From the NCBI GenBank assembly GCA_965113315.1, contig OZ220363.1: a DNA stretch of 64,000 nt; one strand, 5' to 3'. The position numbers were made by a program, and so were the translations under genes. Below, piece after piece: positions 1-14,275 of the stretch. The notes under the pieces are model-generated. The model was not told where the DNA came from. It made no database searches and worked only from the letters and a program-made list of their open reading frames with translations. Within the stretch, counting starts at the first letter, position 1, and every line of letters starts with the position of its first letter. This stretch comes from Podarcis vaucheri (lineage: Eukaryota).

Positions 1-3000
1 ACAGCAAGAAGAGAAGTTGCCACAGGGGCAAATACCTCTCAAATTCCTGTATTCTGCTTCAGAGGAAATGGAAGCCTTTCAAAGGCAGCAGCTGAAATCC
101 ACTGAAAGCAATGTCCTCTACAAGAGCAGCGACCACAAAGAATGCACCCTGTCCCCAGGGAAAGAACTACAAACGCAAGAGCAAATGTTTGATCTGAAAG
201 CACACGCTGCATCTTTATCACAAGGCTTTTCATTGAAGGAAGCTGAAACATTACCAGAGAAAGAAGTGGGTTCCTTTAATTTGAGGTCGACTTTTGAGAC
301 AATGGGTACAGAGACAGAGAGTTTCATAAAACAGCTACAGAAGGCAAGCATACCAGAGGAAGGAGTTTCTCTAAGTGAGGAACTTCGTCAGAGCTATAAG
401 GCGCGGCTGGAGGGAGATAATTCCCTAGAACAAAAATTACAAGCGGAAGCAGAGCTGACAGTGACACAAATACTGAAGAAGGCCTTAGAAACGATTAGCC
501 TTTCTACTGAACAGGAGCCTGCTACAAAACGGCATTGCGATCAGGAGGGGAACATTTCTGAGGAGGCAGTGCTTAGGATGCCAGATGAAGCCTTTCTGTG
601 GGGCCAGCCAGAACCCATTCCTCTCAGTCAGTATTTTCAAAACCAAGTGAAAGAAACTGGTGTCCTCGAAGGGGATAGTTTCATATCTGATTTGAAAAAA
701 GCTGCACATGGAAAGAAGCCTGAAAGTGTTCATGAAACAGGGGGAGAAAAGGCACGTGTTACTGAGCAAACCATTATCAAAGCGAGGAGCTTTTCCACTG
801 AGGGGGCTACTGATATCGAGAAGCCTTTTGATAGCCAAATAATGCCTGACAAACAACCATCATCACACAGCTCAGCCGAGGAACCCTCGTTGGCCCAGTT
901 CCTTCTTTCTTTAAAAGATGAATCACTTATAAGCCAGGGAGGTGTGACAGGAGAATGTGAAACTACTGAATTCATGAATCCTCCTCTAGGAAATCTAACT
1001 GAAGGGGCTACCAAAGAAACTACTCTTCACGCTCAAGAACTTCCTCCTCCTCCTCATGAAGGAGCAGATTTCTCTCTTACAAAATATTTGCTTTCTGCCA
1101 GAGAACAGGAGATCCCGGTTGTCAGAGAGAGCTCATCCAGGACTCTGACCCGGGAGGGATCTATCACATCCTTGGAGGTTGAAGATGTTACATTTAGCAC
1201 CGTTTATGATTATTACAAACAACAGCAAGAACTGACCCGCCCTTTCTCTCCCGAGTCAGAAATGTCTATTGATATTGACAGCATGAGCGGAGATGAAATG
1301 GTAGAGGCTGAGGGATTCTACACACCACCGTCATCAGTGGATAATTTTGAATCTCCCATGTCTTTTGAGTCTTATCACACACCAATTGGCAGCCCGGAAC
1401 GATATTCTACGCCTTCAGAGGAGCGATACTCTACACCATCAGAGGAGCGATATTCTACACCGTCAGAGGAGCGATATTCTACACCATCAGAGGAGCGATA
1501 TTCTACACCATCAGCAGAGTCAAACAGAACTTCAGTGAGGTCTCCTGCAAGTCTAGTAAGGGGAAGTACCCCACCAGAACGTTATCAAACACCCCGTGGC
1601 TCTCGTTTGCAACACAGGAGCTCTTCTCTTGAAGAGCTACGTGCTGAAATGTTCGGTACACCTTGTGAAGCATTGGAACCAAAGGGAAACGAAATTCCCC
1701 CTGCATTTATTAAGCCATTGACTAAAAGAAAAATCTATGAGAACACCACATTGCGTTTTATTGCCGAGGTCATAGGGATTCCCATACCTGATGTGAAATG
1801 GTATAGAAATAAGTCATTGCTTGAGCAAGATGAAAGGGTCAAAATACAAAAAGAAGGTGATGTTTGTATCTTAGAAATCCGCAACATTCAAAAAACAGAC
1901 GGAGGGGAATATATGTGCCATGCAATAAATATCATAGGCGAATCCAAGAATATCGCACAAGTACAAGTGTTACCCCATGATGGAAGAGCTTTGGCTCTTC
2001 CTCCTCCAGTAACTCATCAACACGTCATAGAGTTTGATATAGAACAAGGGTCAGCGTCACGGACACCTTCGCCTCAGGAAATTCTCCTGGAAGTGGAGCT
2101 GGATGAAACTGAGATTAAGGAATGTGAGAAGCAAGTGAAAATAGCCACTATTCCTGAACTCACTTCTGATAATCAAAGTATGATTGTGTCTCTTGATGTG
2201 CTCCCTTTATCTCTGGTGGAACACACAACGGCTTCTTTTGGGAAAGAGAACGAAGATGTTACAATTGACTTTGAAGTCACCGAGATGCCTCCACGCTTTA
2301 CCACCCCTGTCTTTGATGTAGAGGTTCCAGAAAAATCTGAGGCATTGTTTCATTGTACAGTCTCAGGCTGTCCTACCCCAGTAGTACAGTGGTTTAAGGG
2401 AAATCAGTGCATTTCTTCAGACGCTTTGAAGTACGCTGTTAGAAGTGAGAATGGAAGTCATAGTCTTAAAATTCAGAACGTACAGCATTCTGATAGTGGC
2501 ATGTATTTGTGTAAGGCTGTTAATGCTGTTGGAGAAGCTATATGCAGGTGCTTGTTAGCTGTAACTGAGGGCCAAGGGGCTCTTGCAGTGACCAATGATG
2601 GAAGTCAGACAGATTTAAGTTTGGATAGCAGTAGTGGTAGGCCTCAAAAGATTGATTTGCTTGTTGATAATACTATCCAAAATGGCAACCAGACGGAAAT
2701 AGAGCTGGAGTTTGAGTTTGAAGGTGACACTGATGATTCTCAGAAAGCTGTTAAATTGGTAGCTGTTACAGAACAGGAGCAGGGAGAGGAAGAGGAAGGA
2801 GAAGCATGTGTAAATATTAACTTTGATGTATTTGCTGAACCATCCAAAGAAGAGCAGATTGAATTTAAAGGTGAGAGCACAGACAGCTGCAGCTTTGAAT
2901 TTCAAGTTACAGAAGCACCTCCAAAGTTTATGAAACATATTTCCGATTGTGCTTCTTTCAAGGGTACCTCTGCAAGTTTCCAGTGTTTAGTAGTGGGTTC

Positions 3001-3196
3001 TCCAAAACCGGCAATAAGCTGGTTTAAAAATGGGGCATTGATTCATGAAGAGAGATACTGTGTGGAGGAAAGTCAGGAAGGTTGTCACAGTCTGACTATA
3101 AGAAGCTTAGTCCAAACTGATGAAGGCGAGTATAAGTGTGTAGCAACAAACAAAGCAGGGACTGCCTACAGCTGTGCTTCGTTAACAATCTGCTGA
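1..3196 (+). CDS. TTN: Titin novex-3 alternative terminal exon, 3' part (5' end outside window): unique sequence, ERYSTP repeats, three Ig domains, stop
   Basis: Frame open from base 2 to TGA 3194-3196; three I-set domains (PPAF..WYRN..DGGEYMC, PPRF..WFKG..DSGMYLC, PPKF..WFKN..DEGEYKC); lies directly upstream of N2B. Confidence 0.95.
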   Translation, partial: QQEEKLPQGQIPLKFLYSASEEMEAFQRQQLKSTESNVLYKSSDHKECTLSPGKELQTQEQMFDLKAHAASLSQGFSLKEAETLPEKEVGSFNLRSTFETMGTETESFIKQLQKASIPEEGVSLSEELRQSYKARLEGDNSLEQKLQAEAELTVTQILKKALETISLSTEQEPATKRHCDQEGNISEEAVLRMPDEAFLWGQPEPIPLSQYFQNQVKETGVLEGDSFISDLKKAAHGKKPESVHETGGEKARVTEQTIIKARSFSTEGATDIEKPFDSQIMPDKQPSSHSSAEEPSLAQFLLSLKDESLISQGGVTGECETTEFMNPPLGNLTEGATKETTLHAQELPPPPHEGADFSLTKYLLSAREQEIPVVRESSSRTLTREGSITSLEVEDVTFSTVYDYYKQQQELTRPFSPESEMSIDIDSMSGDEMVEAEGFYTPPSSVDNFESPMSFESYHTPIGSPERYSTPSEERYSTPSEERYSTPSEERYSTPSEERYSTPSAESNRTSVRSPASLVRGSTPPERYQTPRGSRLQHRSSSLEELRAEMFGTPCEALEPKGNEIPPAFIKPLTKRKIYENTTLRFIAEVIGIPIPDVKWYRNKSLLEQDERVKIQKEGDVCILEIRNIQKTDGGEYMCHAINIIGESKNIAQVQVLPHDGRALALPPPVTHQHVIEFDIEQGSASRTPSPQEILLEVELDETEIKECEKQVKIATIPELTSDNQSMIVSLDVLPLSLVEHTTASFGKENEDVTIDFEVTEMPPRFTTPVFDVEVPEKSEALFHCTVSGCPTPVVQWFKGNQCISSDALKYAVRSENGSHSLKIQNVQHSDSGMYLCKAVNAVGEAICRCLLAVTEGQGALAVTNDGSQTDLSLDSSSGRPQKIDLLVDNTIQNGNQTEIELEFEFEGDTDDSQKAVKLVAVTEQEQGEEEEGEACVNINFDVFAEPSKEEQIEFKGESTDSCSFEFQVTEAPPKFMKHISDCASFKGTSASFQCLVVGSPKPAISWFKNGALIHEERYCVEESQEGCHSLTIRSLVQTDEGEYKCVATNKAGTAYSCASLTIC
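1397..1516 (+). repeat. Coding minisatellite, 5 x 24 bp (ERYSTPSE)
   Basis: Unit gagcgatattctacaccatcagag at 1397, 1421, 1445, 1469, 1493. Confidence 0.97.
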
Positions 3197-9320: not shown

Positions 9321-9515
9321 TGTAAACTACATCCTAAAATAATGTCCACCCTTTGATTCAAGGTATATTTTAAAATATATGAATGTTTTAATCATCTTGC
9401 AGCATTACAAAGTGTTGTCCTAACATGATAATTGATTGATAGTATCTGGTAGATACAAGATGAATTTTTCAAGAAAGCATTTTAGTAAAATGTAAATAAT
9501 TTTTTCCCCATACAG

Positions 9516-12500
9516 AGATTTCTAGCTCTATTATTGTGTCTTCTGAGGAAGAAAGAACTGAGAGTTACACCAGCGGCCTACAATTATCTGATAGAGATAA
9601 AACACTTGAACTCATGCCTGAAGATCCAGTCTATTCTAGCAGTTTAGAGGTGAAAAGGGAGAAGAGCAATGTCCCAACCTTCCTCAAGCATGTGTCAAAT
9701 GTTGAAATAAGTTTAGGAGATTTAGCTAGACTTTCTGTTGTAGTTACTGGGGATCCAAAACCACAGATACAATGGTATTTCAATAGTGTTAAGCTGACAT
9801 CATCTGCAGACTATAAGTTTGTGTTTGATGATGAAAACTATAGCCTCATTATTCTCTCCACAAAATTTGACCATGAAGGGGAATATACTTGCATTGCTAG
9901 TAATATCCATGGAGAGACAGCCTGCTCTGCTTATCTGAAGGTCAATCCTAAGGGAGATGAAAGGGAACTGGAGGCAGAATTCACTGCAGAGAAGACAGGA
10001 AGTCCTCGACCTCCATATTTTGTTAGGAAGCTAGACCCTGTTCAGTGTGCACAAGGTGCTCCTGCTGTGTTTGAGTACAAAGTGGCTGGGTACCCACCTC
10101 CAGAGATTCAGTGGTTTAGGGGAAGCAACCAGATTTTCTCCTGTGCACAATACACTATCATTCATAATCGAGATGGTTCTGGGTCGCTAATGGTGAATAA
10201 TTGCCAGGGGCCCGATGGTGGCTTATACATCTGTAAGGGAATCAACCTCATAGGTGAAGCCTCTAGCAGTGCAGAACTTCATGTTCTCTTAGACGTGCCT
10301 GGGGAGGCTCCATATAAGGAACAGAAGAGTAAACAGAAAACACGCACCAAGTCATATAAAGAAACTGTAAGTGACGAGGCTACCATCTCACGGATATATG
10401 CCGTTAAACTGCCTGGTGATGATAGGCATGATGGGCAGCATGTGATGTATACAATTGGAACTGAAGATAGGCATTCACTACATAGTGAAGAGGTAGATGT
10501 TTTGCAGGTGGCTTCCTACTCAACAGCTACTGTACAGCAGGAAGCCCTTCTGACCCAACAAGTAGCCTTGCTTGAGTCTCACAAAGTTGGAGAAATTGCA
10601 GATCCATCTTCTCAGGCCAGTGAAAAGGTGGCTTCTTCAGCTTTTACCACAGGTGAGGTAAAGGAGCATCCCGGTTTCCTAGAGCAACACTCTGAACCAA
10701 TTCAAAGCCCACCAATAGTCGAATTGCCGGGTTCCTGGTGCCACCAAGTTTCTGACATCTGTTTACCTGTTGTGGAGGAAATAAACCAAGAAGACAAAGA
10801 AAAGGGGCTGCAAACCAAGCTTCCAGAAATGGTCAGGCCAACGTCAGCTATCGAGCAAACATCTCAGTTTGCCTCCATTCTGTCTGAGGAGAAATATGTG
10901 GTAAGCCCCGGTGAGTCTGCTGTATTCTCAGTCCCAGGAGCTGAGGAAGTTATTGAAACCAGTGAGCCTAAACATACAGTGTGTGTTCCTAGAGTTGAGG
11001 GCATCCAAGAATTGTCCAAGGAAAGTTCTTTGGCAGACCACACACACAAGTGGGAGAATGTCGCACCAGCTAAAGAACGAGGCAGCTTTTTTCAGTCTGT
11101 TGTAGCAGCAGAACAATGCAAGATAAGTGAAGCTCATGCTGAGGCAATTGGTTATGCTGATTCACCTGTAGAAGTTCGTCCAACCCAAGAATCATCCAAT
11201 GTATTACATGTGGCTACGATTGCCTCTGAACAGATGTTCCCCAAAGAGTCCGCCTTTGATGCAACCATTGCAGATCAGCAGAAGGGCTCGCTGGAACAGG
11301 ACAGGCTTGTCCAAACAGCTCTGGTTGCTGAAGAAAAGCAGCAGCTCTTTGATGAACACACTGAGGACCTTCCCAGGTTAGACTGCACGGTGGTAGCGGA
11401 AATCCAAAGAGAGGGTGAAAAGCCACTGCATTTGCCTGTTGTACATGGACAAGGCTCACTTCCTAGAGAAGAGCATTTTAGTTCTGAGGTCCCCCTGGAA
11501 GATGAGGCACTGTCTAGGAAAAGCCCGTGTTTGCTACACTGCTTAGTAACAGAAGAACAAGTCTCCACGTCTTGTGAAGATGCTAAGCAGTTTCCTCCTC
11601 TGGCAGAGGCAGTTAACATTCAGGTCACCCAGGAGCCCATTTCTGTGTTGCATCTCCAAACGAGCCAAACTGAGCAAGTGTTGCCTAAGGAAGGCATCTT
11701 GGCTGTACAAGAACCCGAACCCCAAAATGCTTTGCAGAAAGCTGAAATAATGCTCAAACGTGCTGTGGCGTCTGAGGAAAAAAACCAGATAGCTGCCGAG
11801 GCCCTAGAGGCCTTTCAGAGTGGCATTGCTGGAGAATACCCTGTGGCTATAGCAGAGCCTCAGCTTCGTAAGTGTCTGACCACTGTGGCTGAGGAGATGC
11901 TTCTGCCCAAAGAGGAAATCCTCCCCGAAGCAGGAAAAGAGCAGAAAGCTACCCTGAGGAAGGAAGACTTTCAAACAGTGATGCAGGTATCTGATGTGAC
12001 TGAAGAGAGGGTCTTGGATGTAGGACATGCTGAGCCATTTGAGGCTGTTCAGGCCATGAGTTGTGAGGTGATGTCTGAGCCCAGGTTGCCTTCAGAATCC
12101 ACCTGCGTTGAGGAGCAAGGTGTTCCGATAGAGAGCATCGATCTCTTGGAAGCCACAGAGCAAGAATTTGCAGCCCGCATCCAAGAAGGTCAGTCAGTCA
12201 GGCTCCCATTGTCATTGGAGGAAAAACAGCCATTAAAGGAAGAACACTTGGACAAGATCGCAAGGCCAGATGCTGAGAACGTAAAGGCCGAGAAGCAACT
12301 GGGGCTGCTTATGGATGTGCCTGAAACATGGGAAAACAAAGTGCTTCGGAAAGAAGAAGAACTTGCAGCTGAGACTCCAGTATGTTGTAGCTTAGATACG
12401 AAGGCTCAGATCAGAAGGGCCCTGAAAGTAGCTCTGACAAATGAACAGCACTTATTTCCATTGGATGCTTTCGATGATATTGAGAGCGTTCAATTAAAAA

Positions 12501-13376
12501 CTGTAACAGTGATCAAAGAACCTAAACATGCAACATGCACTTGCCTTATAATCTTGGAAAGTTCCAATACTGCAGAAATAACTCTCTCTCTAGATGGAAT
12601 ATATTCTCAGACAGCTGATTTCAAAAGCGAATTGCAAGCTGCTGTTCATTCCATTATTTTTGACGAGAAACATGTTCTGACAGCAGAGGAACCCAGTGCC
12701 ATAGCAGAACCTAAACACCACCAGTTGCTTGCTTCTTCACCTTCCAAACTAATGCAGTCTGCTACTGTAACTGATACACCTGTTCAGGAACAATCTGTCA
12801 GTAATATTATTGGCTCACCTGAGCTACATCATGCTTACCTGAGTACTGAATCAGAAATACAGGAGGAGCAACTTGTGTCTATTCAAGAAGTCCAAACTAT
12901 TGCTCTCAGTGAGCACATTAAAGATGTAGGTACAACCACACTCACCCTTGATATTCCTGTAGCAGCAGCCCCAGTTGAGAGGTTAATAGATGCTCTAAAA
13001 GTGAAAGAGAGAAAGGAAGAACTTTTTGAGGAAAATGAAGAGGAGGCACATGTAGTTAAGGGTAGCAAACGAGAAGACAGTCTGGTGAGCAGGGATTGTC
13101 CCATCATGCGCCAAAGTTTTATAGACACTGTTGTTGAAGAAGGTGACAGCGTAAGTCTTACTTCCATTATAGAAAATGTTAAAGTGGTGAATTGGTATTT
13201 TGGGGATAAGCTGGTATCTTCAGGAAATGAGTTCAAGTGCTTGCAAGACCATGACACATATACACTAGTAATCAACCAAGCATTCAAGGAAGTGCATCAA
13301 GGAGAATACATCTGTGAGGCTCTGAATGAAGGTGGAAAAACAACAGCAGCCGCGAAACTCACAGTTGTAAAAAGAG
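9516..13376 (+). CDS. TTN: Titin N2B exon (human exon 49 equivalent): I24, I25, N2B unique sequence, I26
   Basis: tacag acceptor 9511-9515, donor GTTG at 13377, 3861 nt phase 1-1; two N-terminal Igs, long E-rich insert, C-terminal Ig ending KLTVVKR. Confidence 0.93.
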
Positions 13377-14275
13377 GTTGGAATATGGGGATAAAATATT
13401 GCTTTCCTATTTTCACTCATTTGCTAACTGAATAGAACACACATATACATATTTGTATCTCTAGTAGCATTTTGGATACAGATATAAAATGTATATAAAC
13501 TTCAGCTGTGCATCACCAAACTAATCACAGATCCTCCACTTTTTGTTTCCTCTTTAGAACTTTTATTTCTTTAAATATATTTCTTATTCACATCTTTTAT
13601 TTGCATTTTGCACTTTTTGGTACTGAAACAAAATTAACTTTTGTTTCATGAATGATGATTGTTAAATAAAACTATTTGTAATTTCAGTGTTTTTTTAAAG
13701 GGTGCATGTCTTAGGAGCACTTTCATCCCCATATCCACAGAGCAACTTGGTTCACTTTTCCTTTTCATTGCTACAATAAAGATGCAATCCTAAACACGCT
13801 TACTAGGGAGGAAGCCCCACTGAGCACAATGAGACTTGCTTCTGAGTAGACGTGCCAAGAGATTGCACAGCACGTTGTAGAAGTCATTGCACCATTCTAG
13901 CATAATGTCACACATTTCATGTTGAAAATGTTCTGCTACAACCTGATATAATTTCATATATCATGTTGTTTGCATGCCTTTAAAAGTAAGTAGCACATCA
14001 GGGTATCTTCAGAGTTCCATTATGCACTGCAATGTATGTAGCCCTCTGGTAGACTGAGCACTGCTTTTGGTTTGCTTTCACCTCTGACAACCATTTTTCT
14101 TTACAGCCACTTTCCTTGGATAGCTCATGAAACCACACATCTCATTTCTGTGGGTCACTTTATTAACAGTGCTTTGGAATGTACACTTATAAGCACCATA
14201 CATGCTATTAGTATTACCATATCCACATGAACGTGGATGGTTGTAACCACATTATTCTTTCACTTTTAACTTCAG

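Follow-up and report, generated by a model that had tools for sequence, protein, structure and literature searches.

Does the "unique" sequence of the titin N2B element, which is supposed to be non-repetitive, conceal an internal repeat, and what would such a repeat mean for the spring that it forms in the heart? Cardiac titin has three spring elements, and the N2B unique sequence (N2B-us) is among them. It serves FHL1/2, alphaB-crystallin and kinase signalling as a hub, is subject in heart failure to phosphorylation that modulates stiffness, and is treated in models as a worm-like chain without features. We addressed the question in a stretch of 64,000 nucleotides (nt) from the lizard Podarcis vaucheri (GCA_965113315.1, contig OZ220363.1), hereafter the window, in which the titin N2B exon occupies positions 9516..13376. 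All features given below lie on the + strand, and residue numbers refer to the 1299-aa translation of the open reading frame (ORF) at 9536-13435. The initial annotation of this DNA had proposed a hidden tandem repeat of about 74 amino acids (aa) in the unique sequence, and we find that this segment is an ancient array of 74-residue modules, apparently without earlier description.

The anchors from which the repeat had been proposed, nine EEK-like, seven E-P-like and seven LPKE-like motifs (23 altogether), were all recovered at their nucleotides in frame 0 of the ORF. Diagonal self-scores of aa 418-1071 with BLOSUM62 gave z=9.86 at an offset of 74 residues and z=7.14 at 148, as against a maximum z of 4.5 in 500 composition shuffles, and thus a significant off-diagonal signal at 74. 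With shuffles within blocks of 5, 10 or 20 aa as controls, z(74) was still 7.7-8.6, so the signal is position-specific and does not reflect coarse composition. At this offset we counted 87 identities over 592 positions, compared with 44.9 expected. Leave-one-out hidden Markov models (HMMs) of the unit scored 14-25 bits for the units that begin at residues 449, 523, 597, 671, 745, 819 and 893 and 7.4 bits for the unit at 967, scores reached by none of 300 shuffles; taken alone, the unit at 1041 fell short of significance (5.2 bits, a score that 11 of the 300 attained). The repeat is seen at the protein level only, because Tandem Repeats Finder reports no 222-nt array in the DNA, and a unit HMM built without squamates found no other match in the window, the novex-3-type ORF included. 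The claim of about nine units at 10790-12750 was essentially right, the best count being eight in-phase 74-aa units over aa 449-1040 (nt 10880-12655) with a doubtful unit on each side. The bulk of the unique sequence is a genuine tandem protein repeat.

A word-indexed search returned 40 orthologous exon products, and the window was aligned with 24 long orthologs to give a 25-species profile. The unnamed proteins P0029, P0031, P0032 and P0034 of ~857-903 aa, possibly human or other mammalian contamination and some of them with many ENA members, were excluded from alignments, profiles and folds. When the profiles of the unit blocks were compared by hhalign, six units matched one another mostly at 75-97% (three pairings are lower), with E values of 1e-6 to 1e-9 and always in register, 1-70 on 1-70. 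Unit 1 (10880..11101, aa 449-522; 16.8 bits, 0/300 shuffles) matches units 2, 4, 5 and 7 at 75-92% and unit 3 weakly (9-12%), unit 2 (11102..11323, aa 523-596; 22.7 bits) matches the core units at 85-97%, and unit 3 (11324..11545, aa 597-670; 16.7 bits) matches units 2, 4, 5 and 7 at 62-97%. Matches of up to 97% are found for unit 4 (11546..11767, aa 671-744; 25.0 bits), whose LPKE motif lies at aa 716-719 with an invariant E719, and of 54-96% to the other core units for unit 5 (11768..11989, aa 745-818; 22.8 bits), whose LPKE motif at aa 790-793 contains the invariant K792 and E793. The most diverged is unit 6 (11990..12211, aa 819-892; 14.0 bits, 0/300 shuffles), with hhalign values of at most 32%, in register; its anchor is displaced by +2 aa, yet no long ortholog departs from 74 aa in this block. 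Unit 7 (12212..12433, aa 893-966; 22.1 bits) matches the core units at 54-94% and unit 8 (12434..12655, aa 967-1040; 7.4 bits, 0/300 shuffles) at 80-85%, the latter in register 4-73 versus 4-73. The doubtful unit 0 (10658..10879, aa 375-448) matches unit 2 at 26-56% (E 1e-4, register 3-58 versus 2-57), and its block is only about half length (36 aa) in most non-squamate long orthologs. Likewise doubtful, unit 9 (12656..12877, aa 1041-1114; 5.2 bits) matches unit 8 at 20-43% in register 1-65 versus 1-66 and varies in length among orthologs.

Pooled over the eight units and 25 species, the consensus has T/V-S-E-E-K at positions 1-5, L at 8, E at 11, L at 16, E-E/P-P at 29-31, L-Q-V at 37-39, V-L-P-(K/E)-E at 45-49, F at 52, A-A at 61-62, K-E at 65-66, L at 71 and S-A at 73-74, and the module reads roughly (T/V)-S-E-E-K-x-x-L-x-x-E-x-x-x-x-L ... 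E-P ... L-x-V ... V-L-P-K-E-x-x-F ... A-A-x-x-K-E-x-x-x-L-x-S-A. Conservation between species is highest at signature positions, namely 48 (0.92), 30 (0.89), 49 and 66-67, and it correlates with the agreement between units (Spearman 0.46, p 3e-5); this concentration is a sign that the repeated motif itself is under selection. The unique sequence has seven columns that are invariant across gnathostomes; three are LPKE residues of units 4 and 5 and a fourth, E995, stands at signature position 29 (E-P) of unit 8. Autocorrelation of the 25-species profile gave z of 14.1, 9.0, 7.1 and 5.3-5.6 at offsets of 74, 148, 222 and 295-297, respectively, and of 6.1, 5.0 and 4.6 at 37, 111 and 185. This full harmonic series points to a 74-aa unit that is itself the double of a 37-aa half, a conclusion less secure than the 74-aa repeat.

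The same period is present in distant lineages. The 74-aa offset is prominent (z 3.3-8.0), and mostly gives the highest self-score, in nearly every ortholog of the long type (1170-1350 aa), including the shark Mustelus and the teleosts (Seriola and a cluster with Nelusetta); the exceptions are the lizard model P0001, which has extra Ig domains, and three fish-like sequences in which 73, 112 or 148 is marginally higher. A given unit of the window is 18-39% identical to the unit of the same number in distant species, compared with 10-17% to other units. Judged by these identities, the units are orthologous position by position from shark to lizard and have not been homogenised since, which argues that the array predates the split of sharks, bony fish and tetrapods and agrees with its initial description as an ancient modular array.

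Unit length has been kept to a striking degree. Each block of aa 449-1040 is 74 residues long in nearly all of the 24 long orthologs, despite an identity of 26-35% to the window, and the array measures 590-593 aa in 15 of the 19 distant (non-squamate) long orthologs. Against these 19, the array shows 0.31 indel events per 100 aa at a mean identity of 31%, whereas the adjacent unique sequence of the same exon shows 2.55 on the N-terminal side (aa 263-448, mean identity 33%) and 5.09 on the C-terminal side (aa 1041-1188, mean identity 25%), an indel density 8-16x higher than that of the array; the value for the third Ig domain of the exon is 0.23 at a mean identity of 50%. By these counts the array is about as indel-intolerant as an Ig domain. 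In comparison with a close relative, 11 nonsynonymous and 8 synonymous changes were found, with a ratio of nonsynonymous to synonymous substitution rates (dN/dS) near 0.5. The alignments thus portray an array that accepts substitutions freely but indels almost never.

AlphaFold2 (AF2) prediction of the whole unique sequence (34 sequences) returned a mean predicted local distance difference test score (pLDDT) of 41, placing three strands in unit 8 and spanning five of the eight unit junctions with helices. A run on aa 819-1114 (52 sequences) predicted a helix at 955-969, strands at 982-989, 998-1007 and 1012-1020 and a helix at 1029-1050 with pLDDT of 63-83, and units 6 and 7 were near 50 in the same run. 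These elements, which appear in both runs, form a predicted alpha-beta3-alpha domain at 12398..12685 (aa 955-1050), in which the three strands of unit 8 lie between two junction helices. A search with the folded module against 48,161 PDB representatives gave no clear structural relative, the best Z of 4.3 being at noise level. For human N2B-us, Sun et al. 2024 (PMC11530556) predicted a 115-aa domain at unique-sequence (Us) residues 354-468, with three strands between two helical regions, and confirmed it by magnetic tweezers; the lizard elements map to Us ~363-461 in the numbering of the 572-aa-type class described below. As modelled, the experimentally proven human folded domain has its lizard counterpart in unit 8 and the junction helices on either side of it, and the folded island would thus be one array module plus two junction helices. 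A purely disordered spring is too simple a picture of a segment in which one unit is predicted to be a folded domain and indels are borne by the array hardly better than by an Ig domain.

The unique sequence falls into size classes. Long forms have ~840-930 aa (926 aa in the window) and are found in shark, teleosts and squamates. The bird class (the P0008 cluster, with titin-like proteins of Buceros and Columba) has no counterpart of aa 263 to about 650 and retains units 4-8 and a shortened tail, and a second short class, whose unique sequence measures 566-577 aa in all but two of its 12 members, has ~80 residues from units 2-3 followed by units 4-8 and the tail; unit 4 is the first unit retained in both. 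The human unique sequence is published as 572 aa, and this second, 572-aa-type class is probably mammalian, as judged from its length and the position of the folded domain. The N2B element is cited in a review as 1302 aa in turtle versus 876 aa in rat (PMC11033294), the turtle element being similar in total length to the long forms. Since the two short classes have different deletion boundaries and the turtle has the long form, the alignments argue that birds and the mammal-like class each lost N-terminal units independently, with five units (4-8) left. In class-only profiles of birds or of the 572-aa-type class the repeat is not detectable (unit-unit probabilities below 41%), which accounts for its having been overlooked in the commonly studied species. 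The further suggestion of the initial annotation, that unit number tunes contour length, holds in part: the loss to five units shortens the spring in birds and the mammal-like class, in line with the rat and turtle lengths, but among the long forms the number is fixed and the unit length frozen, and the spring is not freely adjustable.

Taken together, we favour, with a probability of about 0.6, the reading that the bulk of N2B-us is a decayed tandem array of 74-residue modules, each made of two 37-residue halves and older than the jawed vertebrates, in which module count sets spring length and spacing is functionally read. The array would have arisen by internal duplication before jawed vertebrates diverged. 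The C-terminal third of a module and the start of the next would form a "junction" helix; in module 8 the three mid-module strands would pack between two such helices as a folded, force-sensitive domain, and the other modules, for which little folding beyond residual junction helices is predicted, would serve as extensible chain. With an assumed textbook contour length of ~0.38 nm per residue, each module would add about 28 nm, and the number of modules, about 8-10 in shark, teleost and squamate and five in birds and the mammal-like class, would set the length of the spring. Free substitution combined with almost no indels suggests that the spacing within and between modules is functionally read, and the likeliest reader would be a periodically binding multi-domain partner such as FHL1/FHL2, transient folding of the modules being less likely. 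Units 4-6 map to Us ~85-304 in 572-type numbering, which nearly coincides with the FHL2-binding fragment of human N2B-us, 79-308 (PMC11530556), and the AF2 prediction of Sun et al. places about 13-14 FHL binding sites in a stretch of roughly three modules (PMC11530556).

Several observations weigh against this reading. The FHL proposal rests on the coincidence of coordinates and the published AF2 site count, and the orthologs are phylogenetically related, so that the indel counts are not independent events. The dN/dS estimate comes from only 19 substitutions. When the pooled first halves were compared with the pooled second halves by hhalign there was no match, and the 37-aa signal comes from autocorrelation only. 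Unit 8 joins the family through unit 7 only (80-85%), and units 6, 0 and 9 match weakly, though in register. The pLDDT is below 50-55 for most of units 1-7, where neither folding nor descent from an alpha/beta module is supported, so that an alpha/beta fold of the ancestral module would be conjectural. The mammalian label of the 572-aa-type class is drawn from length and domain position. A more specific proposal, which we consider unlikely, would make N2B-us a periodic docking rail, in which each module, with about 4-5 short strand-forming sites including V-L-P-K-E, binds one FHL1/FHL2, so that the count of modules would determine how long the spring is and also how many signalling scaffolds each titin carries; unit length would have been kept over some 450 million years to match the spacing of LIM domains, and endotherms, by independently cutting three modules, would have stiffened the heart and reduced docking.

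Alternatively, the array may be a historical relic, an ancient duplication that is now a random-coil entropic spring, its lack of indels arising from selection on total length or exon integrity. This is rather doubtful in our view, although AF2 predicts mostly disorder in units 1-7, between-unit identity is only 10-17%, substitutions are fairly free (11 nonsynonymous against 8 synonymous), units 1-3 are dispensed with in birds and the mammal-like class and current reviews regard N2Bus as unstructured. A random coil should tolerate indels of 1-3 residues, each well under 1% of contour length, yet the indel density of the array is 8-16x lower than that of its neighbours at equal identity, and conservation between species peaks at the signature positions of the repeat itself. 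At the other extreme, every 74-residue unit with its junction helices could fold as a weak alpha/beta domain like module 8, giving a chain of domains that unfold at low force and that AF2 missed because of the shallow alignment. The unit length is frozen as in a folded domain, the hydrophobic consensus positions 37, 39, 45-46 and 52 coincide with strands 2 and 3 of module 8, the mean conservation of units 3, 6 and 7 (0.60-0.64) is near that of the folded unit 8 (0.66), and the junction helices recur; we nevertheless find such a chain improbable, as AF2 with 34 and 52 sequences gave pLDDT of about 30-55 outside aa 955-1050 and deletion of the single human domain abolished the sole unfolding step (PMC11530556), although upstream of that domain the human sequence retains no more than units 4-7, in decayed form. 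Finally, the periodicity could be a statistical or compositional artefact of E-rich, low-complexity sequence, given that the region contains 14.7% Glu and that few identities are common to the units. The shuffle, profile and cross-lineage controls have already refuted this: z is 7.7-9.9 against global and local shuffles, the 25-species profile shows the full harmonic series, profiles match in register at E values as low as 1e-9 and the same period occurs independently in lineages with only about 30% identity, and its probability is negligible.

As had been proposed, the segment itself is the titin N2B unique sequence, and it lies in a squamate N2B exon with an Ig-Ig-unique sequence-Ig layout. 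The exon (9516..13376, 3861 nt, phase 1-1) is bounded by splice sites at 9515/9516, with the acceptor ...tacag|AG preceded by a polypyrimidine tract, and at 13376/13377, with the donor G|gttgg. A Pfam scan of ORF 9536-13432 found I-set in three stretches, best at aa 47-136, and no family on aa 263-1188. Together with the Ig signature columns of the ortholog alignments, these define two N-terminal I-set Ig domains at 9674..10303 (aa ~47-136 and ~158-256, the bounds of the second being approximate) and a C-terminal one at 13100..13375 (aa ~1189-1280). The best homolog is a protein of the lizard Phrynosoma (68% identity); others, from Mustelus asterias (shark) and Seriola (teleost), are named titin-like, as are members of bird and teleost clusters. 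The upstream ORF 17-3196 encodes three I-set Ig domains, consistent with a novex-3-type exon, and between 14000 and 64000 there are dozens of open frames of ~100 aa, both of the two tested being I-set Ig, so the window runs on downstream into the tandem-Ig exon series of titin.

The exon is also used in one piece. A Logan contig of run X1, from a close relative and with no tissue on record, fits 9514-13376 without internal joints and passes at both ends into unlike sequence, and therefore the N2B exon is a single piece in a spliced transcript of that relative. The contig differs from the window by 48 substitutions over the exon and by an in-frame CTT insertion at 12731, the sole indel among 49 exon differences, which lies in the indel-tolerant C-terminal unique-sequence tail, outside the array. 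In bulk RNA of the relative, three runs yielded 0, 0 and 2 reads, too few to bear on expression. Outside the array and its doubtful flanks, the non-repetitive N-terminal unique sequence (10322..10657, aa 263-374) is rich in indels and matches no unit profile; AF2 predicts in it a 28-residue helix at 10508-10591 (aa 325-352) with pLDDT of about 61-73, and this N-terminal part is absent in birds and the 572-aa-type class. The non-repetitive C-terminal tail (12878..13099, aa 1115-1188) has no unit match. A Logan-derived protein of 560 aa, P0122, 94-97% identical to the window, reads through the second Ig domain and resumes in frame at aa 320 (DVLQVASY...), lacking ~69 residues of the N-terminal unique sequence (window ~10286-10492, aa ~251-319). 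No fitting GT..AG pair was seen in the window DNA for this gap, and a deletion in a relative, a non-canonical splice or an assembly joint are all possible.

No description of an internal repeat in N2B-us was found in the searchable literature, which included titin reviews of 2021 and 2026, PMC11530556 and the 2025 papers on shark connectin and on connectin evolution, older papers on N2B conservation lying outside that search. Length-frozen modules would provide N2B-us with a coordinate system, in which the human folded domain is module 8 and, by coordinate mapping, the classic FHL2-binding fragment would correspond to modules 4-6. They also predict intolerance to indels, periodic binding of partners and steps of unfolding or binding of about 28 nm, under the contour length assumed above. 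The independent truncation in birds and the mammal-like class may offer a molecular handle on the evolution of the stiffer ventricles of endotherms.

How does the array compare with known systems? In unit size and acidic character it is like the acidic repeats of 68 and 71 residues in the elastic connectin segment of crayfish I-connectin. The kinship with the ~70-aa repeats of invertebrate connectins at which the initial annotation had hinted found no support. With the whole unique sequence as query, an exhaustive HMMER search yielded 34 proteins, none above 1537 aa and with no full-length titins in the library, and turned up no sequence relation to invertebrate connectins, none of which was compared directly; in BLASTP, all the aligned matches except P0103 and P0113 pair with the Ig parts and the unique sequence of the window and are N2B-exon orthologs or fragments. 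The PEVK region of titin, with its PPAK motifs of 26-28 residues and poly-E segments, is likewise an extensible I-band segment built of repeats, with a spring length that varies by module number between lineages or isoforms, but the present array lies in one exon, has no module-wise alternative splicing and keeps its unit length frozen. A PEVK-type repeat as such was rejected, with z of at most 1.2 at offsets of 26-29 and a P+E+V+K content of 35% versus about 70% published for PEVK. The closest system is the titin N2B element (human exon 49), which shares the position in the gene, after a novex-3-type exon and before Ig exons, and the single-exon Ig-Ig-Us-Ig layout. The C-terminal 500-570 residues of the window's unique sequence align with the 572-aa-type class, and the surplus of the 926 aa found here over the published 572 aa of human N2B-us consists of the N-terminal linker and modules 1-3. 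Within it, the structural domain of N2B-us (N2B-us-S), which is characterised in human by cooperative unfolding at a few pN and by cryptic FHL2 sites, has the same order of helix, three strands and helix at the equivalent position, in the C-terminal third, but whereas it stands there as an isolated island, here it would be module 8 of an array, with junction helices shared with its neighbours.

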